Below, one piece after another: positions 1 to 54,838 of a stretch of DNA of 64,000 nucleotides. Source of the stretch: Epithemia pelagica (lineage: Eukaryota; Protista; Bacillariophyta); the NCBI GenBank assembly GCA_946965045.2, contig OX337237.1, positions 1,364,001-1,428,000 on the forward strand, read 5' to 3'. Every line of letters begins with the position of its first letter. Positions within the stretch are counted from its first letter, which is position 1. The position numbers and the translations under genes are program-made. The notes under the pieces were generated by a model, which was not told where the DNA came from, did no database searches, and saw only the letters and a list, made by a program, of their open reading frames with translations.

Positions 1-146
1 TCGCGTTGGACTTGTATACTGAATGGGGTGCTTTGGGGAAAGTGTCTCACTTGGAGCCCCTCATTAGCAATCTCATGGCTGAGGAGAGCGAGATGTTTCA
101 CTGCGGAAGTTCCAGCCCGCTTGATCTTCCATATAGAAATAGCTGA
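1..146 (+). CDS. 3' end of a STAND/AAA ATPase-TPR protein (paralog of 14626-17919), truncated by the window edge
   Basis: Frame from nt 3 reads ALDLYTEWGALGKVSHLEPLISNLMAEESEMFHCGSS...RNS* (TGA 144-146). This matches the C-terminus ALDLYSEWGALGKVSHLEPLICNLMAEETDVFHVICESS of the 14626-17919 protein; I count 7 mismatches over nt 3-83 versus the reverse complement of ~14701-14781. Confidence 0.85.
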   Translation, partial: ALDLYTEWGALGKVSHLEPLISNLMAEESEMFHCGSSSPLDLPYRNS

Positions 147-8073: not shown

Positions 8074-9836
8074 AAGATGAAATGTTAGAGATGAAATGTC
8101 GTTTTCGTTTCAAGTATGGACATGGTTGTCGGAGCGGCTCGAACGACGGTCTTGGATGGCGTGATCGTCAAGGTGACTTTCTTCTCACAACGACGACGAC
8201 GACTTGATGATTCTTGGTTCAGAAGCTCTTTTCCAGTTCCAGCAAGATCTCCCGCCAACGTTTGTTTCACAATCACCCGTGCAAGTCACCTATCCGCGCC
8301 ACTCACTTGCAAGATCATGAACCAAACAAGGTAGTTTGGCATTTCCAAAACAAGGACGACGACTTGTCCTTCACAAAAGTATACAGCCAGTAATGGATGC
8401 TTCTATTCCAAATTCAATACCCAAAGACGGTGACACTGGCTGTTTTTGATACAGTCCACGGAAACAAGCATTGATGATTGTCCTTGTCAGGGTATCGTCG
8501 AAATTTGGTTCTCGCAACACAATGGACAAACAAGCATAACAGAGGCAACGACGACCAGAGGAGAGACTTGCTGGTATAAGACGACGGCATTGGAAAGCTC
8601 TTTTGTACGAATCAGTCGTTTTTGGGACAAGCAAAACGAGAAAGATTTGCTGTGGACTTGGTAATGTTGGTGAGCAAAGCCCGTCGGATCGAAAGAGAGA
8701 TGTCGGCGTCACCAAACAGACGAGTTCGTATTCTGAGAAAACGGGAATATCGAGATAAAAAGGAAAGCCTTTCCTCGAAAAATCCTTTATGGGTCATTGT
8801 CGAAATTTGGGAGAGGGAGATGGGGCCAAGTAAAGAGTCATGTCTTGAAAATGGACGAGCACGGATGACGCATGGTGCGTGGAGCGTTTCAGGGATTCTT
8901 CCAAGGATGTCTGTCTGCTAAGGAATCCATTTTTGCAGACTAGTTACACATTCCATAGACTATATCGCCATCAACAGCCATTTCCGTTGCATCCTTTGCC
9001 TTTACGGGTACTCTCGTACTCCTACTAGACAGAATCTCTATTGAATCCATACGAGTACCGGGGTAGCATGTGTAGAAATAGTAGCGAAACTGTGACGGGA
9101 CTCGTCGTTCTTCTCATGACTCGTGACTGAACTTAGCTTGCCACTCTTTACTCTTTATAATTTATAATTTATAATACTCGTACTGTCTGTATGATCATTT
9201 ATAAAATTAAGCCTGTCATCATGGTTAAGCAAAGGCTTAAGCTTTAGAATCCTGTAGGACATGATTTTTACTTAAATTATAATGCATATAATATTCCCTC
9301 TGATGGGCAATATTGTGAGGCAATTCAAAGGAACTTCACAGAGAGTAAAGGGCATACATTTTATTATAGTCGCCATATTCGCGGAAAATGAGCGCCAGTC
9401 CCACACAACTGTTGACCAGTACTCTATTACTATTACAGCTTCCATGCGCCGCATTCCATATCGACTGCGTGAGTTGACCACGAATCACAAGTGGTCAAGG
9501 CAATGGAACTGATTCCGATGCGTTGTGTTTGTGTATGATGTATGGACGGTCCTGTTAGATTTCGGGAACCACATGTATGTACGAGTACCTTATGCATGCG
9601 GAAAGCAAACAAGGACGACCAATTGAATTCGGAGACGTGCATCGTTTTCTGGTTCCGCATTCCTGTTTCACTCTATACCATCAAGCTGCATAACGATTGT
9701 GGACGTTCATTGTTTGGAAGCTTGCCACAATCTCCTTCTTTTTGTTAGAATCCACAGACGTCGTTGTTTTATCACGGCTGACGGTTCCTACCAAGCTTCC
9801 ATCCATTGGGAATCTCGCAGTTCTGAAAAAATCACA

Positions 9837-11278
9837 ATGGGATTGTTGACTCGACTTGCTCGCACCTTTTTCTTGAGCGGTTTGTCGGTGTTGACGTGCA
9901 GTGAATTGGAGATTCAACAGGAATCAGACAAGGACGGCAATGACAACAACAACAACCAAGATGCCACTCCGAATAATGCTGCTACTGGACAATTGGCCGA
10001 ACGGGGCTCTCTCAGTCGCTGGGTGCAACTGGTGAGCGTCGTATTTGATTTGTTGGATCTTTTTAATTTTGTCTTCGATATGATTTTTGCGATTCGGTTA
10101 TTTCAATTACCCGATTCCATCGCCTACGCGGCTCTCTTGTTGGCTGGAGCTCTCTTGGGTCGATTGGTCGTCTTTCGCGCCACAACCGTCATGTTTCGGG
10201 GAGGCATTGATTGGGCACCTCTTGGATTGCAATTCCCTACCAATCCAACAAAAACAAGCAAGCGTTTGCGCTCTTGTATTGCTTGCTCTTTAGTGAGACG
10301 GCAGTCTTTTTGTTGGAAGATTATCCTTCCTTGGTCGTCTATGCTCATTGGCCCGTCATCAACTTCCCACCCGCTCCCTTGGATACATTGGACAATTACA
10401 ATGTGGCCCTGAGTGCCGCCTCTCTCATTATCTTGATGGCTCTCTTTCTAGTGGCCATTGTCGCGTCCCTGTTCTTACTACAATGGAAGGAATGGACCCT
10501 ACGTGAGTATTGCATCAATGGGCTCAAAATTACCCTGTTTCTTGCAGGATGTGCCTTTTTGGCTCGCTACGTGATTGAAATGGTCATTGGAGCGGTGGAA
10601 TTCACCTTTCGAGATGAACGATCCGTCCCCTCCAATGAGATTTTGTTTATTGAATTGTGTGATGGTCAAACCTTGGAAACGCGGTACGAATTATGTAACG
10701 AACGCATCTTTGTGGTCAAGGTGGTGATTGCGTGGTTCACCGCGGCAATCTTTGTGGCCTATCTGTTTTTCAAACCCGCCACCTATGCGGTCGAAGAAAG
10801 CTTTTATACACGACACAAATCACGGGTCCACACCTTTTTGACCAGTGTCCGTACTTCCACGTTGCGGCAAAGTGAGGCCGCCGCAGCGGCCGACGACCCC
10901 GACCACCGCAGTTCCGGCCGGGCCACCCACACACCGACATCCTCCCAACTCGGGTCGACGCGACGAGACGACCCGAAACGAATCACCTTCCAGGAGAAAT
11001 TTGAAGATGAAGAGAATCAGGGGGAAACTCCTACCAAACAGGATACTACTAGAACGTCGTCCCAATCCGAGGTTCGACAAGTTTCCGTGTCAATGGGCCA
11101 TACCGAAGAAGACACGAACGAAAACATCAAGTCAGAAAAGAAGGCCAAGAAAAAGAAGAAAAAGAAAGGATCTTCACAAAAGACGAGGACCTCGTCGACT
11201 CCAAAAGAGCGAGTCGGCGAAGAGGAACAGGACGAACGTCGTAAGAAGAAAACAAGCATGTCGTTGCAGCAAAGCTAG
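9837..11278 (+). CDS. Multi-pass membrane protein of unknown function with charged C-terminal tail; frameshifted near 10250
   Basis: ORF 9699..10412 supplies the N-terminal hydrophobic helices from MGLLTRL (ATG 9837), and ORF 10211..11278 supplies further helices and a K/E-rich tail. One extra A in the A5 run at 10250-10254 joins them (..FPTNPTKNKQAFALLYCLLF..). Confidence 0.6.
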
Positions 11279-11472
11279 ACACGACATATCTACCAATTGC
11301 CACATCGAGTTGATCAAACAAGGACAAACTTGGTCTTTCCTCTGAGATTGTTATGGACGAGAACGAGGAATATACTCGTAGTCCCTGCTGAAGTTTGTGC
11401 CTGCTGTCTACTTGATCCTATCGGTGACATATGGTTTACTTGAATATGACGTTCGGTGGGTGAAATTAAAGT

Positions 11473-11540
11473 ATGGACTTGATCGAATGGAAGAATGCGT
11501 TCTTTCTGAGACGCATCCTTTCTCTTGCCATGAATTCGCT
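11473..11540 (+). repeat. Direct repeat, left copy (68 bp), flanking the nuclease-kinase gene
   Basis: ATGGACTTGATCGAATGGAAGAATGCGTTCTTTCTGAGACGCATCCTTTCTCTTGCCATGAATTCGCT. Nearly identical to 13734-13802, with differences confined to one base and one short central patch. Confidence 0.9.
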
Positions 11541-11737
11541 CGCGGAGAGGCGGCTTCTTGCTAGTTTCTAGGTGCCTGCATGTGCATGAAGCTTATCAAT
11601 AGAAGGTAAAATAGTGTAGAAATGCAAATTATTATAGAGGAAAGCGGTCTCAATTGTTCCAGAAAGGGTTCCGGAAGCGGATATCCAAACTGGACGCACT
11701 TCTTACTGGATTTTCGTTTCGTGCTTCCACTAACTGT

Positions 11738-13612
11738 CTAGAAAGCAGCCTCCCCATGATCTCTTGACAAGTGGGCTTCTAGATGTTGATAATGTTGGTT
11801 CAGGTACGTCTCCTTGTCCTCGTCACTGCTCCCTTTATCAAACGATTCTATATCCGCCAGATCGAACAGGAAGATTTTCTCATGTAACGTTCCCACATGG
11901 CGCCAGGCACGGTCCGTGTGCTTAAACATGAGATTCTTGGCAGTAAAGCGCTGCTTCAAATGTTCTCGTACTTTACGCGCATGTTCAGTAGTGCGATGTT
12001 GAATGTGTTGAAAAAACGGATGGACGACGCAAAAGAGATCGTTTTTGAGTTTGCACCAAAAACCGTTGTTCTGAAGTTCAGGATATACGATATGGAAGTT
12101 TCTCACTTCCCTTTTCACGAATTCTTTGGCCATGTTCTGGAATTCCTTTGTTGGAATCAGTTGGTGGTTGTCGTTGTATCGCCGAACAAAGGATTTCACA
12201 ACGCATTCGTCACCATTTTCGGTGACTGCTCTGAATGCCTTTGAAGTCAAACCGGAACCCAAAAACTCGGTTAGGAAAAAGGTATGACTTTCTCCAGCCA
12301 ACCTTCCAGCCAACGAGGGTGCTTGAGCTGGATTTCCACTACAAGTGATATTGAGCATTCCAGGTACCAAAGTTTTCCCATCCATTCTGATGACTCGTTT
12401 GTTCAGCAAATAGCCTTTTTTGAGTTCAACGAGCGCGGCCTTTGTTTTGTGAAATCCCACCAGGGCACAAAGTATGCCGTTGACAAAGGCAGGGATCATT
12501 TCGTGCATCTTCAGGGCCTGCGACATGGCCAGACTGCGAGAGCTTTCGTCAAATGTGTATCCAGCGTTGCTTGTGACTCGTTGTGACCTGCGGAAGGTGC
12601 TCTGAGTTGGCGAAATGCCTTGAACTGCACCAACCAAATCTTCCAAACCGCCTCGATGTTGACACAGAACTCTTCTCGTGTGATCATTCTCAATCCAGAC
12701 AATTCTCGTTTCATTAAAGGTAGTGATTGCCCCAAAAGGATTCGGATGGCCAAACGCAGTCATAGCGGAAAGCTGGGTGTGAACTTGGCCTTTCACGACT
12801 CCGAGGGAGTTGTCATTCAGAAGCTCTTTTACCGGTTTTTTCGTTTCTAATTCGAAAATCGGAAGGCCAGACATTACTTCGTACACGACGGCATGATCCA
12901 AAAGATTGGAGTCCAAATGCGATTCACGTCGCAGGTGAAGCTCTATGGATCCGTCTGTGGAACCAAGCGTGGAGAGTAGTGTGTTACAAATGGTAACTGC
13001 ATCCCCCAAGGCAGCGTGAGTCCAGCCTTGTACATCGTACTCATTTATGTAGGAAAAATCGCATGATTCAATCTTGGCCATGAGTTGCGACGCTCTCGTA
13101 TTTGCTTCAGTGAATGGAACTTGATGGATATGAAACTGACGATCGTCGCTCGGTACAAACGTATGCGAGCCCCGGTGAGACGTGTCGTTCACGTGGCAAA
13201 CAAGCTGGCACTTGTCAGAATAGACTGTGTCCAGACGCAAAGCTCCACAGATCGTTTTCTTCGCCAACTCCTCCTTAATCTTCGCCAGGGCCTCCGTCTT
13301 CTTCGCCAACTCCTCCTTAATCTTCGCCAGGGCCTCCGTCTTCTTCGCCAGGGCCTCCGTTTTCTTCGCCAAGGCCTCCTTCAATACCAACGTACGGTCA
13401 CAGAGAGAGACTAATTGCTCCTCCGGCACGTTCGCCCCCTGCCAGATCTCCACATATTTCCCTATCGTCGAATGGATTTCCCTGTCGGACACGTGGCGGT
13501 ATTTGGCTCTTTTCTGCGGCGATCCTACGATTTTGGCATAGATGGATTCTAAGCATAGTCTTCGTTGCTGGTTCCATCGAAAATGGGGGGCGAGAAGGGT
13601 GCCTATATCCAT
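11738..13612 (-). CDS. Coiled-coil + PD-(D/E)xK restriction-endonuclease-like + atypical protein kinase fusion (Crinkler-type effector architecture)
   Basis: Intronless, 624 aa. Heptads KKTEALA/KIKEELA; nuclease-like RESHLDSNLLDHAVV...PIFELETKKP...GQV; kinase-like FLGSGLTSKAF, CVVKSF, REVRNF, HTDRAWRHVG, FLFDLAD. Confidence 0.7.
   Translation of the reverse strand: MDIGTLLAPHFRWNQQRRLCLESIYAKIVGSPQKRAKYRHVSDREIHSTIGKYVEIWQGANVPEEQLVSLCDRTLVLKEALAKKTEALAKKTEALAKIKEELAKKTEALAKIKEELAKKTICGALRLDTVYSDKCQLVCHVNDTSHRGSHTFVPSDDRQFHIHQVPFTEANTRASQLMAKIESCDFSYINEYDVQGWTHAALGDAVTICNTLLSTLGSTDGSIELHLRRESHLDSNLLDHAVVYEVMSGLPIFELETKKPVKELLNDNSLGVVKGQVHTQLSAMTAFGHPNPFGAITTFNETRIVWIENDHTRRVLCQHRGGLEDLVGAVQGISPTQSTFRRSQRVTSNAGYTFDESSRSLAMSQALKMHEMIPAFVNGILCALVGFHKTKAALVELKKGYLLNKRVIRMDGKTLVPGMLNITCSGNPAQAPSLAGRLAGESHTFFLTEFLGSGLTSKAFRAVTENGDECVVKSFVRRYNDNHQLIPTKEFQNMAKEFVKREVRNFHIVYPELQNNGFWCKLKNDLFCVVHPFFQHIQHRTTEHARKVREHLKQRFTAKNLMFKHTDRAWRHVGTLHEKIFLFDLADIESFDKGSSDEDKETYLNQHYQHLEAHLSRDHGEAAF
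13255..13385 (-). repeat. Intragenic 21-bp tandem repeat encoding coiled-coil heptads
   Basis: About six near-identical 21-nt units (cttcgccagggcctccgtctt / cttcgccaactcctccttaat on +) encoding EALAKKT/EELAKKT/EALAKIK. Confidence 0.9.
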
Positions 13613-13733
13613 CCGTGCGCGGTAGTCTAGGTAGGTCTACCTACCTAGTCTAGATGAACATCTAATCAATGGACTATATACTCTAGCTGAAAGCTGAACA
13701 TCTACTGGACAAAAAGAGATATTCGGTTATTCA

Positions 13734-13802
13734 ATGGACTTGATCGAATGGAAGAATCCGTTCTCTTTCAGGACGCATCCTTTCTCTTGCCATGAATTCG
13801 CT
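13734..13802 (+). repeat. Direct repeat, right copy (69 bp), flanking the nuclease-kinase gene
   Basis: ATGGACTTGATCGAATGGAAGAATCCGTTCTCTTTCAGGACGCATCCTTTCTCTTGCCATGAATTCGCT; see 11473-11540. Confidence 0.9.
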
Positions 13803-14625
13803 ACTCTCGTGGTGATTTCCTTCTCCTTAGTTTTGTCATATAGAAGCTTCAAGACCCGCTTATTTTAGTATGCTCCCATCCGAATTCCCATCTTCAACGT
13901 AATATCTACAAACAAGTGTAGAGACTGATAGTGCTTGATCATCCAGGGATTGGAGGCGGTCGATGAGCTTGCCCTTCTTCTAAAAAGAAATGCTCCTTCT
14001 CCCAGGTCGGACTGGAGATAAAATAGGGGGTAGGGTTGACTTTCGAGGGTCAAGCGTCGCTCTTGGATCGCTGCCTTTTGGAGCCTTCCGTTGTATGACG
14101 ACGGGAAGGGGCCAAAATCCTTCCGTAGCCTCATAGTACCATACATACTCCCATCATTAATTTATAGCCAAGGTAATACAGGTAATAATGACTCGTGAAC
14201 CGTGAATGTGAAGGTCTGAGGTCGGTTCCGGACGCTGAGCCTGTTCTGGAATGCCGATCCGTCTCTTATTCAGATATAGTCTCTTTCATAGGGTTTCTTT
14301 TGTATCAGCGTATTCTATACATAGAGCTCCGTATGCGAGAACTGAGTAGATTGAACGAGTGGCTTGTGTTTCCGCTGATTCTTGAAAGGAACATTCCAAA
14401 GTATCGGGGAACTTTTTAAAGACGACGACAAAGCCAGGCTGAACGACTCAACAGCGAAATGAGATAATCATGGAGCAGCGTATAGTTGATTATACATACC
14501 ATTCGTCGAAAATCCCATGCTAGCTGTTGGGCTTTCTGAAGTGTAGTCGAGAAAACAATGACAAAAACACAGTTTCCACCGGGACAGCATCAGTTCTTTC
14601 AAGGGAGCCAACTTTTATGAACGGT

Positions 14626-17600
14626 CTAACTGTGTTCTTGCTTGGAGTCTGCGGTAAACTCAAATGAACTTTCGCATATAACGTGAAAGACATCGGTTTC
14701 CTCCGCCATGAGATTGCATATGAGGGGCTCCAAATGAGAAACCTTCCCCAAAGCACCCCATTCAGAATACAAGTCCAACGCACGACGATAATGGTATCTT
14801 GCTTCATTGTTGTCTCCTATTCGAAAAGCATGAGCGGCACATCGTTCATGTGCTAGACCCTGGTAATTGGTAAAGCCGTTTCTTCCTGCCAGCAAAATCG
14901 CTACTTCATAATCTTTCTTGGCTTCCGCCAGGTTGCCATCCAACGAGGCCAGTTCTGCCTGAATGAGCGACTCCGCATATTGCACTGCAATGTTACCTCG
15001 CGAAGACCATGATTTCAACCGTGACAAAAACTTGCCTGCTAGCTCTTGTCTCTTCCTCTTTCCCCCAGAGTCTTGTAAGGAACGAGCTACTGAGATGCAA
15101 GAAAGAGCGCAATATATGTACATTTGTCCGTGGTGTGCAAGACCTGGTTTTTCTTTCTCTGCGCGGAATGCGTCGTACCCAGCAAGCTCCATCAAAGAGC
15201 CCACTTGCTGAAAATCATCGAACCAAAAGGCACATGCTAATCTTGTGCGACAAAGATGTCGGAATTCAACCTCGTATCGAATGTTTCCAGTGACAAGAGA
15301 AATAACTGCATTTATATCCAACACTTCACCTCCGAGTATATGTTTGCCATCACGCTGTGCAAGGTTAAGAACAAGCTGCCATGATATTTTTGAGCAAAGC
15401 ACATGTTTAGAGAGCTTCAAGCTCTCCATTTGAGCAACGTACTTGCTGAAGTCCTCCAGGATAAGCGGCAGTTTCGTTCCGGTAAAAATGCTGAATTCCG
15501 TTAGAAAGAAAATCGACCAAAATGCGGAATAGAGGTCCCCAGTTGCCAGACCAATATTGTACGCGCGCAGAAGCGGTTTCTTGCACGTTTCTAGCGGTGC
15601 TTGCATGCGCATAACAAACTGGTAGCAGAGGAACAAAGTGCGAGATTCGTTTTGACGAGACGTAAACGTCAAAGACAGATCCGCGTATTTCTTAGCCGAG
15701 GCATAGTCTCCAACAGAAACAAGCAAAATCCCAATACGAGCCAAAAGGGGAGCTGTCATATCTGCAATGCCGTTGTTCAGCGTCCACCGAAGCCCCTTGA
15801 GAAATGCGAGCGGCATCAATTTCGGATCACATTGATACGCGACAGTCCCCAATCGATCAATCAAGTAGACAACCCATACTTTGGAGGGATCTGATATCGG
15901 ACCAAGCTGCTTAATCCTAGCGATTGATCGATCCATGCCCGCCGATGTACGAAGTACTCCTGCCATTGTGAATAAAAAACGTTGGTGTTTCGGGAAGCTG
16001 CATCCAAGCTGTTCTAACAAATGCAGCGTCAAGTCTTTTGCCTCAGCAGTGCGGCCTTGAGCACTCAGCGAATCAAGATGAGCAATCGACACACGTCGCT
16101 TGTCTAGAAGAGTAATGGTTTTTTGTTTCGCAAGCAGAACATAGATTTCGTTCACTTTCTCATGCTGTCCAATACAAAAGCACCCTTCTGCCAATGAAGA
16201 GTAGAAGTCTAGAGCCAGCTTTTCATTAGTCTTCAGCGAATCTTCCGGCAATAAAGCAAGTCCCTTGGCCAAATATTCCGTCGACAACTTGAATGCAGAT
16301 GACGCAAGAGCTGTGTTTCCTGCTCGAAGATTGAGGCCAGCTATTTCCAAGCGCAATTTATCTTCCATACCAAGCCTATCAGCCCTTGTATTCAAGAGAT
16401 GAACGACAGAAAACAAGTGTTCACTTAACTCATCGCAAGAAAGCTCTTCAAATAAGAGAGATCCGACTTCGAATTGAATATCATCGAGCTCACTTTGGTC
16501 TACCAATTGAAACAATGCCTCCCTTATCTTGTCATGTTCCCAATGATAGACTCCAGCCTTTAGTGTTCTCAACAACCGTTCGTGTTCAAGAATCCCTGTT
16601 ATTGTCAAGACAGAGCTTCCATCTGTGGTAGTCGCCTCATTCCCAATTTTACCTTGATACTTCTCATACATGAGATTCAAGTCACCAATATTATTGCAGT
16701 AGTGACGGATCACAATCTCCAAGCTTGCCGAACTAAAGATTGTACCCAAACAAGCAGCTCGTGGGAGTAAGGTTTGAAGTTCTTCTGGAAACTCTTGAAG
16801 ACGCGCCAACAACATTGATACTACGTTCTCCGTTGCCATAGCATCTGATTGAATACTTGCCAAGTTCCACTTCCATTTGAACGAACCCAGGTCGAAGACC
16901 ATGTGCTTACTGGCAGTAAGCATGGTAAGGAACTGCTTGACATAAAACATATTCCCGCCAGTTTTGAAATGAACGAGCTTCGCAAGAGCAACAATATCTT
17001 CGTCAGTAGAGGAAATGAGAGATGCAAGGAAATCTTCCACCACAGCTTGTATTACATTCTGCAATTTCAGTTCTGTGATAGCCGCAGATATTGCACCAGT
17101 CCTTTGCTTTACTCGTTCAACTACTTGTCTGAATTCATGACTATCGCCCATTTCGTCCGATCGGTACGTTGTCACGAGAAACAAGGAATCGAGCTTCGGA
17201 TCCTTCATCAAGGCCTCAAGCATATCTAGTGAGGCTTGGTCTGCCCATTGCACATCATCAATTACCAGTGCGATTGTTCCAAACAAGGATGCTGTTTTGA
17301 AGAACTGGGAAAAAGCTTCGTGAAATGCTGGGCCGAGTTGCGCGTAATTTACTACGTGAGTTGGCGTTTCAGTTCGTTCGTCCGAAGCCTTTATGTTGTG
17401 CTGCAATTGTTGAATCTTTGGTAGGACAATTTCCAGCAATTCAAGACTTTCCTTCGTCAAGCTCGTACAGAACTGCTTTTGTACGTCTCTGTTTGAAAAC
17501 GAATAGCGTTTCGGAGGATCGGAAAGTATCTCACAAAGCAAATCGCATGCCTCGATGATTGCTCCGTAGGGTTGATTGTAGTCATATTTGAACTTGCCGC

Positions 17601-17919
17601 ATATGAAAAAACCAGCAGAAGTTGCAACCGTTTTTCGGACTTCTTGTGCCAACGCCGATTTACCAACACCCGGTTCTCCACCGATCAACACAATTTGCTT
17701 ACTGGGAACTTTTTGCGCTTGCTGATATTTTTCTTGTAGTACTTTGAGTTCCTGTTCACGGCCCAAGAAGTCGCATTTATCGAACTGCAGCTTGTCAATG
17801 GTGAAGCTCTCATCGCTCTTTCGATGGGCCAAGGATAATGATGAAGGACGTTGTGATTCGTCGAGTCTTTGATTGCTGCCAAGTAAGCTGATTTCGGCAG
17901 TTGGCGGCGTGTAAGACAT
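14626..17919 (-). CDS. STAND-class/AAA_16 P-loop ATPase with C-terminal TPR-like helical repeats
   Basis: Intronless, 1097 aa. FLGREQEL, Walker A GGEPGVGKS, Walker B LVIDDVQWAD, LFLVTTYR, TGGNMFYV, winged-helix WEHDKIRE, and C-terminal helices GLAHERCA...EARYHYRRALDLYSEWGALGKV. This is the ATPase/TPR body of the bacterial multi-sensor kinase type without kinase or sensor domains. Confidence 0.85.
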   Translation of the reverse strand: MSYTPPTAEISLLGSNQRLDESQRPSSLSLAHRKSDESFTIDKLQFDKCDFLGREQELKVLQEKYQQAQKVPSKQIVLIGGEPGVGKSALAQEVRKTVATSAGFFICGKFKYDYNQPYGAIIEACDLLCEILSDPPKRYSFSNRDVQKQFCTSLTKESLELLEIVLPKIQQLQHNIKASDERTETPTHVVNYAQLGPAFHEAFSQFFKTASLFGTIALVIDDVQWADQASLDMLEALMKDPKLDSLFLVTTYRSDEMGDSHEFRQVVERVKQRTGAISAAITELKLQNVIQAVVEDFLASLISSTDEDIVALAKLVHFKTGGNMFYVKQFLTMLTASKHMVFDLGSFKWKWNLASIQSDAMATENVVSMLLARLQEFPEELQTLLPRAACLGTIFSSASLEIVIRHYCNNIGDLNLMYEKYQGKIGNEATTTDGSSVLTITGILEHERLLRTLKAGVYHWEHDKIREALFQLVDQSELDDIQFEVGSLLFEELSCDELSEHLFSVVHLLNTRADRLGMEDKLRLEIAGLNLRAGNTALASSAFKLSTEYLAKGLALLPEDSLKTNEKLALDFYSSLAEGCFCIGQHEKVNEIYVLLAKQKTITLLDKRRVSIAHLDSLSAQGRTAEAKDLTLHLLEQLGCSFPKHQRFLFTMAGVLRTSAGMDRSIARIKQLGPISDPSKVWVVYLIDRLGTVAYQCDPKLMPLAFLKGLRWTLNNGIADMTAPLLARIGILLVSVGDYASAKKYADLSLTFTSRQNESRTLFLCYQFVMRMQAPLETCKKPLLRAYNIGLATGDLYSAFWSIFFLTEFSIFTGTKLPLILEDFSKYVAQMESLKLSKHVLCSKISWQLVLNLAQRDGKHILGGEVLDINAVISLVTGNIRYEVEFRHLCRTRLACAFWFDDFQQVGSLMELAGYDAFRAEKEKPGLAHHGQMYIYCALSCISVARSLQDSGGKRKRQELAGKFLSRLKSWSSRGNIAVQYAESLIQAELASLDGNLAEAKKDYEVAILLAGRNGFTNYQGLAHERCAAHAFRIGDNNEARYHYRRALDLYSEWGALGKVSHLEPLICNLMAEETDVFHVICESSFEFTADSKQEHS

Positions 17920-18322
17920 TCACATTTCGAAGCAAGACAAGAGATGCGATATGGATATCTTTCGCCGTTCAGGTCCGCCTTGGTGTGTACGGATACATAC
18001 GAATATGACACAAGAAATAAAGAAAGTTGACTCCGGTGGGAAGGAAAACAAACTGTGACTGACTGTCATGGCCAAAAGCCAAAAGCCAAAACACCATTCC
18101 TAATTCCTACTCCCTACCTCTAGCTAGCCGTCGCCGTCGCGCTTTGCCAAAGGTCTTATAGTAGTCTTAGGGATAGAGTTAAATAATTCATTTGTCGCTC
18201 CTTAGTCGATTGAGGTCGCACTTCCGACTGGATAAAGAGGTCAACGTCAACAGACATCGGATGAGATGTGATTACAATGGTGTTGGTGTGGATGCGAATG
18301 AACAGGCCTTTCTCTCCCCAAC

Positions 18323-29937: not shown

Positions 29938-29977
29938 GACGTATTCCAGTCACGTTCGGTTTACGTTTGGTCGCGCA
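29938..29977 (+). repeat. Direct repeat, left copy, flanking the trypsin-like gene
   Basis: GACGTATTCCAGTCACGTTCG (29938-29958) and GTTTGGTCGCGCA (29965-29977) recur exactly at 31560-31580 and 31606-31618. Confidence 0.85.
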
Positions 29978-30393
29978 TTATTTACTCCCCAGCGTGCGGT
30001 AATTTAGTCGCGAGTGAGTCATGTATATTGGATGGAACGCACCCAGTAACTGCGACCCAACTCACCCCAACTTGGGAGTAGCGCATTTTTCGTTCCATGT
30101 TCTGCGTCACAGGACTTATTGAGCTGACCACCAAGAACTTGGAAGAAAACATCAACAAAAGCGATGAAGCTCTCTGTCTCCAAATCCTAGATGTGAAGTA
30201 CAAGAACTGGTGCCAAAAGGAGGAGGGGGCAGGCACCTGGGCAGCAGCAGGAGTCCAACAACGCCCCCACAGCCAACGACAAGAAGAAGGAGAGTACCAA
30301 CCTGGTGGATAGACAGGATAGACAGGACATCTTAGTTTTTCGATTGTAACAATCACGTCCGTCCCTCTCTTTTCCTCCCAGAGTCAGCGATAT

Positions 30394-31389
30394 TCATAAA
30401 ACCTTGAAAACAGGGTGTTCATTGATCGAAAAACCGTAGTTTCGATCAGTCAGTACAGGATGTGCAGCAGAATGAATTGCAACAGCCTTTCCATAGTCGG
30501 CTTTGTCCACTGATGACGGCTGGTTCTTGTCGAGAAGAAAAACAATGGCCCCCGAGCAACCAGTGAAACTGTTGATGTCATACTCAATAAAATTTTGTCC
30601 CACATACAGAATCTCGCCTGTGTAGATGTTGAGTTGATCAGGTAGACCAAAGAATTTCTCAATATCGTCTTGTTTGAAATCCGGTAATTTCACATTCTTG
30701 TTCCCCATAATCGTCTCCTGCGTGGGCTTGGAGAGTTTAGAGAAGAAGACAGCCATCCCCACCTTCATTCCTTTTTCGAGCTTGAGGGCTTTCCGAACTC
30801 TGTCAAAAGAATGCTCTGCTCGGCAGCAGGGGTTGCTGGGGCCATATATGGTAGGACCAACGCTGACATCGAATCCAAACTCGGCTATTGCAGGAAGAGC
30901 CACCATAAGGTTACCATCTCGCAGGTCCAACCTGTCACTGGCGTTCGGTTTCCAGGCAAGATCGGGCCAGTCAACACCAACTCCATTGTCCTCCACGGTG
31001 AGCTCGGCTGTTGTGGGTTTGAACACTCCTTTGGTTTCGTGAGCAACAGTACGCAGATTGTGCTTGGCTGTGACGGGGCGCACTGAATAAAGCTGAACAG
31101 TCTTTCCACCAGTGCTGTATCCTTTGGCCTCCTGACGAAGAAAGCCGCCATGGCAGTGGCCCTTTTTCCACCAGGAAGAAGCGACTCCCTCCGGACGTAA
31201 GCAGACGAGAAGCGGGTGGCACTTGCCTACCACCTCTGTAACCATATTTGCCGAAATTGCGTTCGTGTCGTCGACATTGCCAAAGCCCCATCGCTTCATT
31301 TCCTTTGTCCAGTTGACGAGACATTCCGACACGCCAACTAGGTTTGCGTCTTCCTTGCCTTCGATAGCGGCAGTGAGACAGTCGTCCAT
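30394..31389 (-). CDS. Trypsin/chymotrypsin-fold serine protease (no signal peptide), intronless
   Basis: Catalytic His motif VTAKHN, candidate Asp in WPDLAW/RLDL, nucleophile motif INSFTGCSGAIVFLLD, and downstream GKAVAIH. The N-terminus may extend to ~31445 through a 1-nt frameshift. Confidence 0.75.
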   Translation of the reverse strand: MDDCLTAAIEGKEDANLVGVSECLVNWTKEMKRWGFGNVDDTNAISANMVTEVVGKCHPLLVCLRPEGVASSWWKKGHCHGGFLRQEAKGYSTGGKTVQLYSVRPVTAKHNLRTVAHETKGVFKPTTAELTVEDNGVGVDWPDLAWKPNASDRLDLRDGNLMVALPAIAEFGFDVSVGPTIYGPSNPCCRAEHSFDRVRKALKLEKGMKVGMAVFFSKLSKPTQETIMGNKNVKLPDFKQDDIEKFFGLPDQLNIYTGEILYVGQNFIEYDINSFTGCSGAIVFLLDKNQPSSVDKADYGKAVAIHSAAHPVLTDRNYGFSINEHPVFKVL

Positions 31390-31559
31390 AAGTCGTCAAT
31401 TTCAGGACGACGAGCCATACACGACTCTCGCCGAAACTCTGTCATCAGACGTGAAGTCGTTCGTTCTCGGGTTTTGAGGAGAATCAAGCTCTGAGGTCCT
31501 CTCGGTGTTGCAATAAAATCTCTAGCGGCGCATTTCCTCTGGATTGGGTGGAGGAGGCG

Positions 31560-31618
31560 GACGTATTCCAGTCACGTTCGCGTCGGATAGTTTAGTCCAT
31601 GAGAAGTTTGGTCGCGCA
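31560..31618 (+). repeat. Direct repeat, right copy, in the divergent promoter between the protease and the GT-like gene
   Basis: Same 21-bp and 13-bp blocks as 29938-29977, separated here by a 25-nt instead of a 6-nt spacer. Confidence 0.85.
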
Positions 31619-51615: not shown

Positions 51616-52198
51616 GTTGAAATCAAACAACACCCTTTTCGTCCAGAAACACGTTCCTCCTTGCTATGTAGACTGTATGGACAGCATGAAGAGGAGAAAG
51701 TCTCTTTCCCTCTCTTGTCTCTTGTGGCAACTTGTGGTGCAAGAAAATGGTGCGTTGGAATCAGGCTGGCTCGACGCGCGCGGAGCACGTGGAGGGCTAT
51801 TGTAGTTGTAGACTACAATACGAGCTCCATCAATCGATATGGGTAACCGTAGTGGCCCGTGCTTTTCATACCCCCACTGTTTTTTCTACAGTGATTCTAA
51901 CTTCGTAGGGACACCACTACGGTCATTTTGCACTGCGTAACACCACCATGACACACTCAAGCCGGTGTGCACCTCCAACGAAAGGTGCCAGCTCTCTTGC
52001 GACCATGAAGGATGCCTAAGAATCAAGTGTACCGTGAGGGAATGGGCGGGCAGGGATGAGTTGGCTTTTTTATGGACCGACGGCAAGGTTTTGAAGTCTT
52101 CCTTATTTGGCATCCGAAACAGAGGAAGTGACCTTGAGAAGAAGACGACGACAACCGATAGAATGCATCCAGCAAGTCAGCGATCATACGTCCGCATG

Positions 52199-53230: not shown

Positions 53231-53698
53231 ACGATTGCCTATTGTACGACCTACGACACAGAGAAGCATGTACTAAGCTAGATAGATGTTCTGTACTAGT
53301 AGCTGTTTATATGCATACTCGTAGAGGAGGCGGGTTGATTATTGTGCTAGCGCCGCCTCACCGTGGTGATGGTGTGGGTGCAGTTGGTGAGAAGAATCTC
53401 GCAACAAAATGTGCAAGAGCATGAGGGCAATTCATTGTACTTTAGGAAAATGTATGGTGTAGTGAATCTCGTAGGGCCGGAAGTTCAACCGAGTATCGGA
53501 AACGTGAAGCACGGGCCACTACGGTTACCCATATCGATTGATGGAGCTCGTACATGAAGATACAAGAACGCGAAAGAGTTGAAGTAACGTGAAAACACCC
53601 GTTTACCGGCTATGCAGGAATTTTGTCTGCGTCAAGCACCATCAAATTCAAAGGCATCCACAACAATCCACTGACAAGGAACCAAAGACCCATGACCC

Positions 53699-54838
53699 AT
53701 GATTCGACGAATACTTCAACTGGCACCATGGATTCTCATCGTTTCCTCTTTCAGGAAAGCCTTGGCGAAGGACGACGACAGTATCGTTGGTAGTCCACTT
53801 GAGGAGGGGGCACCCGAAGACCGAACACAGGGGCGAATCCATCGTCATCCGATTGAACAACTTCCCGATATTGATCCGAACGACACATTGTATGAAGAAG
53901 AGAATGACAAGTTAGTTTGCACAACATTGGGAGTTTGTTTGTCCGACCACAGGTCGGATCCACAACCATTGGACCATGTCGTTCCTCCATCGGAATGGAT
54001 GTGTCGCGATTTGCGAGACGATTGCCCCAATCGACCAATGGAGGAATGTTTGCAACGAGGAACCATTACCCATGCCGAATGTCCCGTCACTTGTGGCACC
54101 TGTGAGGGTCGTGTCAAGACCATTCTCATGGATCGAGATCACGTCGACTCGTTCTTTCAACCTCACTTGATACCATTGGGAACTTTGGCCAGATTCTCCA
54201 ATCAACTCCTAGACGTTGTGGGGACCGACTATGGGATTCCGCAAGAAGTGGTGGATACCCAACCGTTGAAACGGGAACTGTTGGATCGAGCACGACAAGT
54301 GGCCGAATACATAGCCTATCTACCACCAGAACTGCAACAAGACTGTCGCAATCTCCACAAGAATTGCATGTTTTGGGCCGCGACAGGTGAATGCGAGGCC
54401 AATCAAGAATTCATGCATGTCGATTGTAGACCAGCCTGCTTTCGCTGTTCCGATACGAACATCTTGGATCGAGCACGACAAGTGGCCGAATACATAGCCT
54501 ATCTACCACCAGAACTGCAACAAGACTGTCGCAATCTCAACAAGCTTTGCATATTTTGGGCCGCGACAGGTGAATGCGAGGCCAATCAAGAATTCATGCA
54601 TGTCGAGTGTCGACCAGCCTGCTTTCGCTGTTCCGATACGAACATCTTGGATCGAGCACGACAAGTGGCCGAATACATGACCCGACTACCACCACAACGG
54701 CAACAAGACTGTCGCAATCTCAACAAGCTTTGCATATTTTGGGCCGCGACCGGTGAATGCGAGGCCAATCAAGGATTCATGTATGTCGAGTGTCGACCAG
54801 CCTGCTTTCGCTGTTCCGTTACGAACGACTCTGCCTAG
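53699..54838 (+). CDS. Secreted ShKT-domain repeat protein (no catalytic domain)
   Basis: Signal peptide MIRRILQLAPWILIVSSFRKALA. One divergent ShKT (CRDLRDDC...CPVTCGTC) plus three CRNLxKxCxFWAATGECEANQxFMxVxCRPACFRC units. Confidence 0.85.
   Translation: MIRRILQLAPWILIVSSFRKALAKDDDSIVGSPLEEGAPEDRTQGRIHRHPIEQLPDIDPNDTLYEEENDKLVCTTLGVCLSDHRSDPQPLDHVVPPSEWMCRDLRDDCPNRPMEECLQRGTITHAECPVTCGTCEGRVKTILMDRDHVDSFFQPHLIPLGTLARFSNQLLDVVGTDYGIPQEVVDTQPLKRELLDRARQVAEYIAYLPPELQQDCRNLHKNCMFWAATGECEANQEFMHVDCRPACFRCSDTNILDRARQVAEYIAYLPPELQQDCRNLNKLCIFWAATGECEANQEFMHVECRPACFRCSDTNILDRARQVAEYMTRLPPQRQQDCRNLNKLCIFWAATGECEANQGFMYVECRPACFRCSVTNDSA
54281..54826 (+). repeat. Three tandem near-identical 183-bp (61-codon) ShKT units
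   Basis: TTGGATCGAGCACGACAAGTGGCCGAATAC begins at 54281, 54464 and 54647 (period 183). Confidence 0.95.

Follow-up and report, generated by a model that had tools for sequence, protein, structure and literature searches.

A gene enclosed by direct repeats

The stretch of DNA analysed here (the window) comprises 64,000 nt of contig OX337237.1 (C10 hereafter) of the diatom Epithemia pelagica (assembly GCA_946965045.2), and the whole-genome searches covered 60.5 Mb. It carries a gene encoding a protein of 624 amino acids (aa), in which a coiled coil, a predicted nuclease domain and a predicted kinase domain follow each other. Two direct repeats, named R, enclose this gene, which only one of the two haplotypes carries. 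The left and right copies of R, 68 and 69 nt long respectively, are 92.8% identical with one indel (blastn E 8e-21). The insert between them extends over 2,193 bp (11541-13733) and contains a single open reading frame (ORF) without stops. The stop codon of this ORF lies 197 bp from the end of the left R and its ATG lies 121 bp from the start of the right R. These measurements agree with the preliminary description of this DNA, which had reported a direct repeat pair around an intronless 624-aa ORF with spacings of about 200 and 120 bp.

When the 64 kb were compared with themselves, R was the only dispersed direct repeat whose copies lie more than 200 bp apart, besides a 183-bp tandem array. 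Furthermore, R occurs exactly twice in the genome, both copies being those of this locus. It is therefore not a dispersed generic repeat, and a miniature inverted-repeat transposable element (MITE) was rejected for the same reason. R has no Rfam match at E <= 1 and its folding is not unusual. A weaker similarity had also been proposed to continue for about 50 bp past R. This extension does not hold, since its similarity score was reached by 25-47% of shuffled sequences and since the empty allele (see below) limits the duplicated stretch to 68/69 bp.

Presence/absence polymorphism at the locus

A public ENA assembly (ERZ21939226) holds both alleles of the locus: a filled one on ctg1359l, which matches 21.7 kb of the window with 100% identity, and an empty one on ctg1282l (452 kb). 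Protein clusters built at 90% identity provide a simple view of the relation between these contigs. All eight neighbouring proteins (the STAND NTPase, a 355-aa membrane protein, a glycosyltransferase, a 456-aa protein, a TPR protein, SF3b10, an ankyrin protein and a 211-aa protein) have a second cluster member, which in every case is encoded by ctg1282l. The cluster of the 624-aa protein has a single member.

The same result was obtained at the nucleotide level with L050, the stretch of ctg1282l around the membrane-protein allele. On the left side, window positions 9351-11540 align with L050 8997-11189 (98.1% identity) and, on the right side, positions 13734-15410 align with L050 11121-12824 (93.5%). 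These two alignments overlap in L050 by 69 bp, i.e. by one copy of R, and a three-way alignment indicates that the left and right flanks of this allelic R continue the left and right flanks of the window, respectively. The haploid reference contains no contiguous empty site: the allelic sequence matches it only at the window locus, in two pieces that overlap by R. Hence, the segment 11541-13733 is polymorphic for presence or absence, and its borders coincide exactly with the copies of a 68/69-bp target duplication. One haplotype carries the insertion and the other retains the empty site, where R is found once; the insertion is thus hemizygous. The preliminary description had proposed to search for an empty site carrying a single repeat copy, and ctg1282l provides it; with an empty allele and colinear neighbours, the 2.2-kb unit proves to be an inserted segment, as had been suggested. 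The features of the locus are listed in Table 1.

Table 1. Features of the inserted segment and of its neighbours, in window positions
Feature	Position	Strand	Remarks
Left copy of R, target duplication	11473..11540	+	Left flank continuous with the allelic contig to 11540, no further
Left-junction filler, about 50 bp, derived from STAND NTPase	11541..11591	+	STAND A 88% (opposite strand), STAND B 82%
3' flank of the inserted gene	11592..11737	-	Unique in the genome
Intronless 624-aa gene: coiled coil, predicted PD-(D/E)xK nuclease fold, predicted DUF5898 kinase	11738..13612	-	Intact
Predicted minimal kinase domain, residues ~445-616	11765..12280	-	Gly loop 451-460, K473, E502, D567, D584
Nuclease-like domain, residues ~186-310	12683..13057	-	Predicted alpha-beta-beta-beta-alpha-beta core; E191, D239, E256-x-K258, G275-Q276
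21-bp tandem repeat, 6 copies, coiled-coil heptads	13253..13381	-	Within the long helix, residues 64-118
5' flank brought in with the gene, presumed promoter/5' untranslated region	13613..13733	-	Unique in the genome
Right copy of R, target duplication	13734..13802	+	Right flank continuous with the allelic contig from 13734 on
Last exon/ORF of membrane-protein gene, outside the insert, convergent with it	10211..11278	+
1097-aa STAND NTPase (AAA_16 + TPR), STAND B, outside the insert	14626..17919	-	Intact here, broken on the allelic contig

The two contigs also differ outside the insert. The STAND B allele of ctg1282l is broken up into four ORFs. Between the STAND and glycosyltransferase genes, ctg1282l carries an extra segment of 3.1 kb (L050 15523-18668 versus window 18055-18075) that encodes a Harbinger-type transposase (DDE_Tnp_4) and a DUF6818 gene. 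Moreover, colinearity of the haplotypes stops at window position 9351, where ctg1282l has at least 9 kb of unrelated sequence (L050 1-8996) with ORFs of 910, 812, 323 and 324 aa that have no Pfam match.

Other repeated sequences were observed in the window. An imperfect palindrome of about 30 bp (13623-13652) lies upstream of the inserted gene, 10-40 bp before its ATG. The tandem array mentioned above consists of three copies of the 183-bp unit, 90-97% identical (54281-54829), and a perfect 46-nt inverted repeat (51819-51864 and 53507-53552) has arms that are 1.6 kb apart. Around a presumed protease gene (29938-31618), which had been suspected of lying between duplicated promoter-like sequences, the self-comparison gave no repeat at E <= 1e-4.

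Age and origin of the insertion

The two copies of R in the window and the allelic R show five small differences in the three-way alignment. At two of these events, the allelic R has the state of the left copy and, at two others, that of the right copy, in alternation along the sequence (left, right, left, right); in addition, it displays one private change, an extra G. This single allelic R looks ancestral, each of the duplicates having since drifted, rather than being the product of a recent crossover. The divergence between the R copies is about 7-9%; in the adjacent spacer, the haplotypes differ by 5.3% mismatches and 8 indels in 823 bp. Since the R copies are about as diverged as the two haplotypes in this spacer, the insertion event is, judging from these rates, old. 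The nearest relatives outside the genome offer no orthologous site for comparison, being 54% (truncated copy on a short Logan contig) and 36% identical. For the neighbouring STAND protein, the best outside match is 42% identical.

The left end of the insert provides information on its source. Its first ~50 bp, beside the left R, match coding sequence of STAND NTPases and not the flank of a gene of the inserted family. The best match of this filler in the whole genome is the paralogue STAND A (C10:1363177-1363225), which is located 12 kb to the left on the opposite strand and is 88% identical; identity to the adjacent STAND B (15564-15612) and to its allele is 82%. The junction between R and the filler displays a CGC microhomology. 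No further genome copies were found of the non-coding flanks of the insert. The nearest paralogue of the inserted gene is a pseudogene with several stops on the same contig (C10:1.042 Mb, at a distance of 333 kb), with 80-87% nucleotide identity. Its similarity is limited to the interior of the coding sequence (CDS; window 11825-13479), without flank homology, and it was therefore rejected as the donor. The pseudogene shows about 11% mismatches, a divergence in statistical agreement with the age of the R duplication.

STAND A itself (C10:1360860-1364116, with one internal TAA) ends at the start of the window (1-116). STAND A and STAND B share 87% aa identity, lie 14.5 kb apart in inverted orientation and thus form an inverted repeat (3-101 versus 14683-14781), their DNA similarity ending near the stop codons. 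The STAND and nuclease-kinase genes are not a conserved gene pair, since nowhere else in the genome do members of the two families lie side by side.

Neither terminal inverted repeats (TIRs) nor long terminal repeats (LTRs) nor a transposase domain were found at the insert, in agreement with the preliminary description. Since R has two copies, since the flanks of the insert are unique, since no termini are shared among inserts of the family (three loci compared) and since there is no TIR or transposase, the insert does not qualify as a transposon that has ends or an enzyme of its own; DNA transposons, LTR elements and Helitrons were all rejected on these grounds. A processed retrogene would likewise be an intronless gene copy located between direct repeats. 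However, the 3' junction lacks a poly(A) tract (there is no T/A run adjoining R in 11541-11640), which led us to reject this origin. Further differences from a processed retrogene are the 121-bp upstream region that came in with the gene, a duplication that far exceeds the usual length for events mediated by long interspersed nuclear elements (LINEs) and the fact that all of the family is intronless anyway.

The most likely origin is a single break-repair or replication template-switch event, i.e. a "templated insertion", since the duplication is too long for a transposase, the insert has two templates, the junction shows microhomology and element ends are lacking. In such an event, a DNA break would have occurred in the spacer of about 1.1 kb between the membrane-protein and STAND NTPase genes. 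A copy of a paralogous gene and a scrap of about 50 bp from a nearby STAND gene would have been pasted in, so that a segment of 2,193 bp with one complete gene entered the spacer. Synthesis would have restarted 68 bp upstream of the break, giving rise to the duplicated stretch R. Fork stalling and template switching (FoSTeS), microhomology-mediated break-induced replication (MMBIR) and polymerase-theta end joining are mechanisms that generate templated insertions and short tandem duplications with inserted junction DNA. The locus resembles such events in having one insertion within a target duplication, more than one template, junction microhomology and no element ends, and also in that the duplication length varies at other loci of the family. 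Templated insertions have been described mainly in cancer and human germline genomes. Unlike those, the event reported here appears to be old, is heterozygous, carries a whole gene and seems to be recurrent in one gene family.

Three other explanations of the R-insert-R structure were considered. According to one of them, the empty allele is a revertant: both haplotypes were once filled and one of them lost the gene by recombination between the R copies, as the preliminary description had envisaged for this unit. Direct repeats of 68 bp can support such a deletion, and its product would contain exactly one R copy, as seen. However, the agreement of the allelic R with the two present copies is interleaved and not a left part followed by a right part, which excludes a simple crossover between them: the allelic R is no chimera of these copies. 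Only a deletion that took place while the R copies were still identical is left, which needs two events against one for insertion. Looping out is therefore unsupported, and we regard it as unlikely.

The preliminary description had also suggested the integration of a circle. A mobile cassette moving as a circle and recombining through R would yield the same structure by a single crossover. Nevertheless, R is found nowhere else in the genome, so that a circle of this kind would lack any further source or target, and no recombinase is encoded by the insert. Moreover, the duplications that flank other members of the family differ in sequence and length, each being local to its site, and a filler derived from a STAND gene is not expected from clean recombination but points to break repair or template switching. 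This origin, which is also unsupported, is very improbable. Finally, either the insert or the empty allele might be a mis-join of the assembly. The chance of such an artefact is practically negligible, given that the R copies of the window differ from each other at several sites, that the allelic R has its own change and that the contigs of both alleles are long (2.06 Mb and 452 kb), with flanks that are colinear and diverged.

The encoded protein

The protein was examined by alignment with 13 relatives and by AlphaFold (AF2) models, both the full model and the model of the nuclease domain only reaching a pTM of 0.69. Its N-terminal part contains a long helix (residues 64-118) whose heptads (ALAKKTE...) are encoded by the six tandem copies of the 21-bp repeat. 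The number of repeats in the coiled coil differs among paralogues.

The following domain displays, in the AF2 model, helices at residues 191-215 and 268-286 and strands at residues 225-230, 240-245, 251-257 and 293-297, in the order alpha-beta-beta-beta-alpha-beta; the domain-only model has the same topology. A motif E...D...ExK...GQxxD(Q/Y) is found family-wide and corresponds here to E191, D239, E256, K258 and Q276. D239 is nearly invariant, E256-T-K258 aligns to the consensus VE.KQP and G275-Q276 aligns to GQ..D(Q/Y). An exhaustive structural search of this domain with VIA-align gave mostly restriction-endonuclease folds, BpuSI being first (Z 6.5, 125 aligned residues). TT1808 (Z 5.2) and SgrAI, 3ijm, DrdV, R.BspD6I, EcoRI, Cas4, HsdR and SduA were also retrieved, all with Z < 8, i.e. 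in the "common" range. Foldseek returned nothing at E <= 0.001 for the nuclease domain alone. The alignment-free Atlas search with the nuclease part retrieved fungal clusters with Pkinase_fungal as well as bacterial BpuSI_N and HSDR_N. According to these models and matches, the domain likely adopts a PD-(D/E)xK nuclease fold.

The C-terminal part corresponds to Pfam DUF5898, which is listed in the PKinase clan of Pfam (PMC9758233). The query scores 23.3 bits, below the cut-off of 28.9 bits, and its relative P0003 scores 30.7 bits, above it; DUF5898 matches 13 of the 14 family members (best E 1.2e-10). A kinase fold was recovered by Foldseek with a probability of 1.0 to CLK1, Rio2, CK1, CDK12 and OspG, and the profile matches the Gly-loop/beta3 region of CK2 (E 0.007). 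The motif LGSGLTSKAF is found at residues 451-460, and K473 and E502 are invariant. D567 belongs to a DDxxWRHVG motif and D584 to FDLAD, their catalytic roles being assigned by position only. Residues ~445-616 are thus predicted to form a minimal kinase domain of the DUF5898 type. No other Pfam domain was detected at E <= 1 in the query and its 13 relatives, and the protein matches none of the PADLOC models of anti-phage defence.

The succession of coiled coil, PD-(D/E)xK-like nuclease and atypical kinase that had been read from the sequence is upheld by the alignment, the AF2 models and the structure searches. Of the two folds that the preliminary description wished to see modelled, the kinase fold was recovered; for the nuclease, the core topology was recovered and the matches to solved structures are moderate.

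The ORF seems to have been kept open by selection since the insertion. From the indel rate of the adjacent spacer since the split of the haplotypes, about 6.8 frameshifts are expected in the CDS under neutrality. Since none is present (P ~0.001), the intactness of the ORF is unlikely under neutrality. Divergence from the pseudogene and from a foreign relative is flat across codon positions, which hints, with low power, at relaxed or diversifying change of the protein.

Gene family and flanking duplications

The inserted gene belongs to a very large and fast-evolving diatom family (Pfam DUF5898). In the genome, a profile search located about 45 loci of the family (at least 45), which together account for at least 70 matching segments, pseudogenes included. 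Seven copies form a tandem array on C6 (G000:C6:3355322-3481438), where they are mostly about 14-18 kb apart with one gap of about 46 kb; each of them has one in-frame TAA in the match, which may be an intron or a shared defect. In public data, 1,693 cluster representatives were found at E <= 0.001, including 313 at E <= 1e-30, most of them being 600-650 aa long and covering both domains. A word-based protein search missed almost all of these relatives, and adding the family alignment to that search gave nothing more. One match is named, a transcript of the diatom Nitzschia sp. RCC80, and relatives of the gene are therefore expressed. The foreign relative L023 (Logan SRR6869042) shares 82% nucleotide identity over the nuclease part and loses all similarity past the equivalent of window position 12504. 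It is a truncated or rearranged copy without kinase.

Five other loci of the family were read with flanks of 3-9 kb, which makes six with the locus described here. Direct duplications bracket the gene or genes at four of these six loci, namely this one and three of the five others (0.14-1.3 kb). The C16 paralogue is located between direct duplications of 1.34 kb that are 93-94% identical and present on both haplotypes. These duplications (L046 379-1705 and 5097-6435, also in L045) enclose a 3.4-kb segment with the family member, and the duplicated stretch holds a host ORF, of which one copy is whole and the other broken. The duplications at the two other loci are weaker and seem older. At C3:3.71 Mb, a family copy lies between duplications of about 0.43 kb with 73% identity (L051 7240-7640 / 10329-10751) and, at C4:0.81 Mb, two family members lie between 142-bp duplications with 75% identity (L053 8629-8760 / 13935-14058). 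The C2 and C7 loci have no flanking duplication within the 3-9 kb read; when flanks of only 1.5 kb were read, repeats were seen around none of the other family loci. At the C7 locus (L054 3001-8710), an LTR retrotransposon with identical 216-bp LTRs and an intact 1689-aa pol ORF is located directly upstream of the family member. Furthermore, three of six other family members have no allele of at least 90% identity on a second contig, which collapsed assembly regions could explain. In a control of 200 kb, local direct-repeat pairs were found several times per 100 kb, mostly as LTRs, tandem genes and repeats within proteins. Two of the six loci are strong cases and two are weak ones, which is suggestive of an enrichment of flanking duplications in the family.

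One may therefore ask whether the family propagates itself, either because its own nuclease nicks or breaks DNA and thereby promotes copying of the gene into new sites, with target duplications that vary in length, or because a Spok-like drive (see below) lifts rare copies. The local direct duplications at four of six loci (69 bp, 1.34 kb, ~0.43 kb and 142 bp), the members lacking a second allele, the high copy number and the flat codon-position divergence of an ORF that is nevertheless kept would all fit such a process. However, few loci were sampled against a rough control, similar repeat pairs being found elsewhere in the genome. Two of the six loci bear no scar and two of the four scars are weak. 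Members found on a single contig may lie in collapsed regions. We consider self-propagation improbable, although less so than a circular cassette.

Relation to known conflict systems

The Spok proteins of Podospora and other Ascomycota are toxin-antidote drivers (Vogan et al. 2019, PMC6660238). Their N-terminal coiled coil is encoded by a nucleotide repeat of variable length and is followed by an HsdR-like PD-(D/E)XK nuclease with a QxxxY motif, which is needed for killing, and by a C-terminal atypical (ELK/Kdo-like) kinase, which is needed for resistance (PMC6660238). The protein encoded by the insert has counterparts of these parts in the same order: an N-terminal coiled coil encoded by a repeat, a predicted PD-(D/E)XK nuclease with a Q-x-x-x-Y-like motif and a C-terminal atypical kinase. 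Like Spok genes, its genes are single, intronless-looking and organized in multi-copy families with pseudogenes and presence/absence variation. The alignment-free look-alikes of the whole protein in Atlas include a fungal SPOK2_N+Kdo cluster (0.92) and a fungal Crinkler+Pkinase cluster (0.89).

There are also clear differences. The Cys/His cluster of Spok proteins (C-x3-C-x13-C-x5-H-x7-H) is absent from residues 320-450 and from the family alignment, and the kinase is here of the short DUF5898 type. Unlike the insert with its 69-bp duplication, Spok genes move on giant Starship elements. None of the papers searched links Spok to diatoms and, to our knowledge, no meiotic driver is known in these algae. 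The protein can be described as built like a Spok, but we do not call it a Spok, since the likeness is one of architecture and the look-alike score is the only link.

The preliminary description had likened the gene to the Crinkler/RHS-type (CR) effectors. According to the summary of Zhang et al. 2016 in the review PMC5289972, about one sixth of CR C-termini combine a restriction endonuclease (REase) and a kinase that is thought to regulate the nuclease, as in CRN8 of Phytophthora. The predicted protein shares with them a C-terminal restriction-endonuclease-fold domain coupled to a protein kinase domain, and this part of the comparison stands with respect to the architecture outlined there. 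However, no match to the Crinkler/Ubl header (PF20147) was detected by Pfam at E <= 1 in the query and its 13 relatives, and no signal peptide or LFLAK-like motif was obvious on reading the N-terminus. Unlike CR effectors, the protein has a coiled coil in place of the header and its host is a free-living alga. It looks intracellular rather than injected. Its closest functional analogue, as far as architecture can tell, would be Spok rather than an injected effector. By analogy, a toxic or executive role probably falls to the nuclease, with the kinase acting as its regulator or antidote. From the folds, the motifs, the dynamics of the family and this analogy, we infer that the gene is a conflict or selfish gene.

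Biological significance

Taken together, the locus is best explained by a hemizygous templated insertion with a 68/69-bp duplication, which brought in a gene that has since been kept by selection and that would be a nuclease-kinase conflict or selfish gene. We consider this whole account probable. Several points weigh against it. Insertion is not formally separable from an insertion followed by an early loop-out on the other haplotype, and ctg1282l could stem from another strain in the same sample instead of being the second haplotype of one cell. The filler is only about 50 bp long with 82-88% identity, and no donor locus was found, the closest paralogue having only the CDS interior in common with the insert. 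As for the protein, the structural matches of the nuclease are moderate (Z < 8) and Foldseek alone gives no match, the resemblance to Spok is one of architecture and the support for expression comes from relatives.

A bolder proposal is that the family is the diatom counterpart of the Spok drivers. Its copies, spread by rare templated insertion with target duplications of differing length, would bias their own inheritance or make use of their own nuclease, and the insert described here would be a segregating driver. We put this forward as a speculation that is rather unlikely to be right. If true, this would be the first candidate for a meiotic drive or selfish toxin-antidote gene in diatoms, as well as a way of moving genes without transposon ends.

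Whatever the role of the gene, the locus offers a before-and-after view of the entry of a whole gene into a compact algal genome, both alleles being available in one assembly. Its junctions can be read to the base, with the 68/69-bp duplication, the filler from a neighbouring gene and the microhomology. Even as an ordinary structural variant, the insert would remain a well-documented case of templated insertion outside animals. Moreover, the hemizygous state of the insert gives a direct handle on the transmission of a member of the family. If members of this family turn out to be often hemizygous and scarred, diatoms may harbour an overlooked class of selfish or conflict genes.

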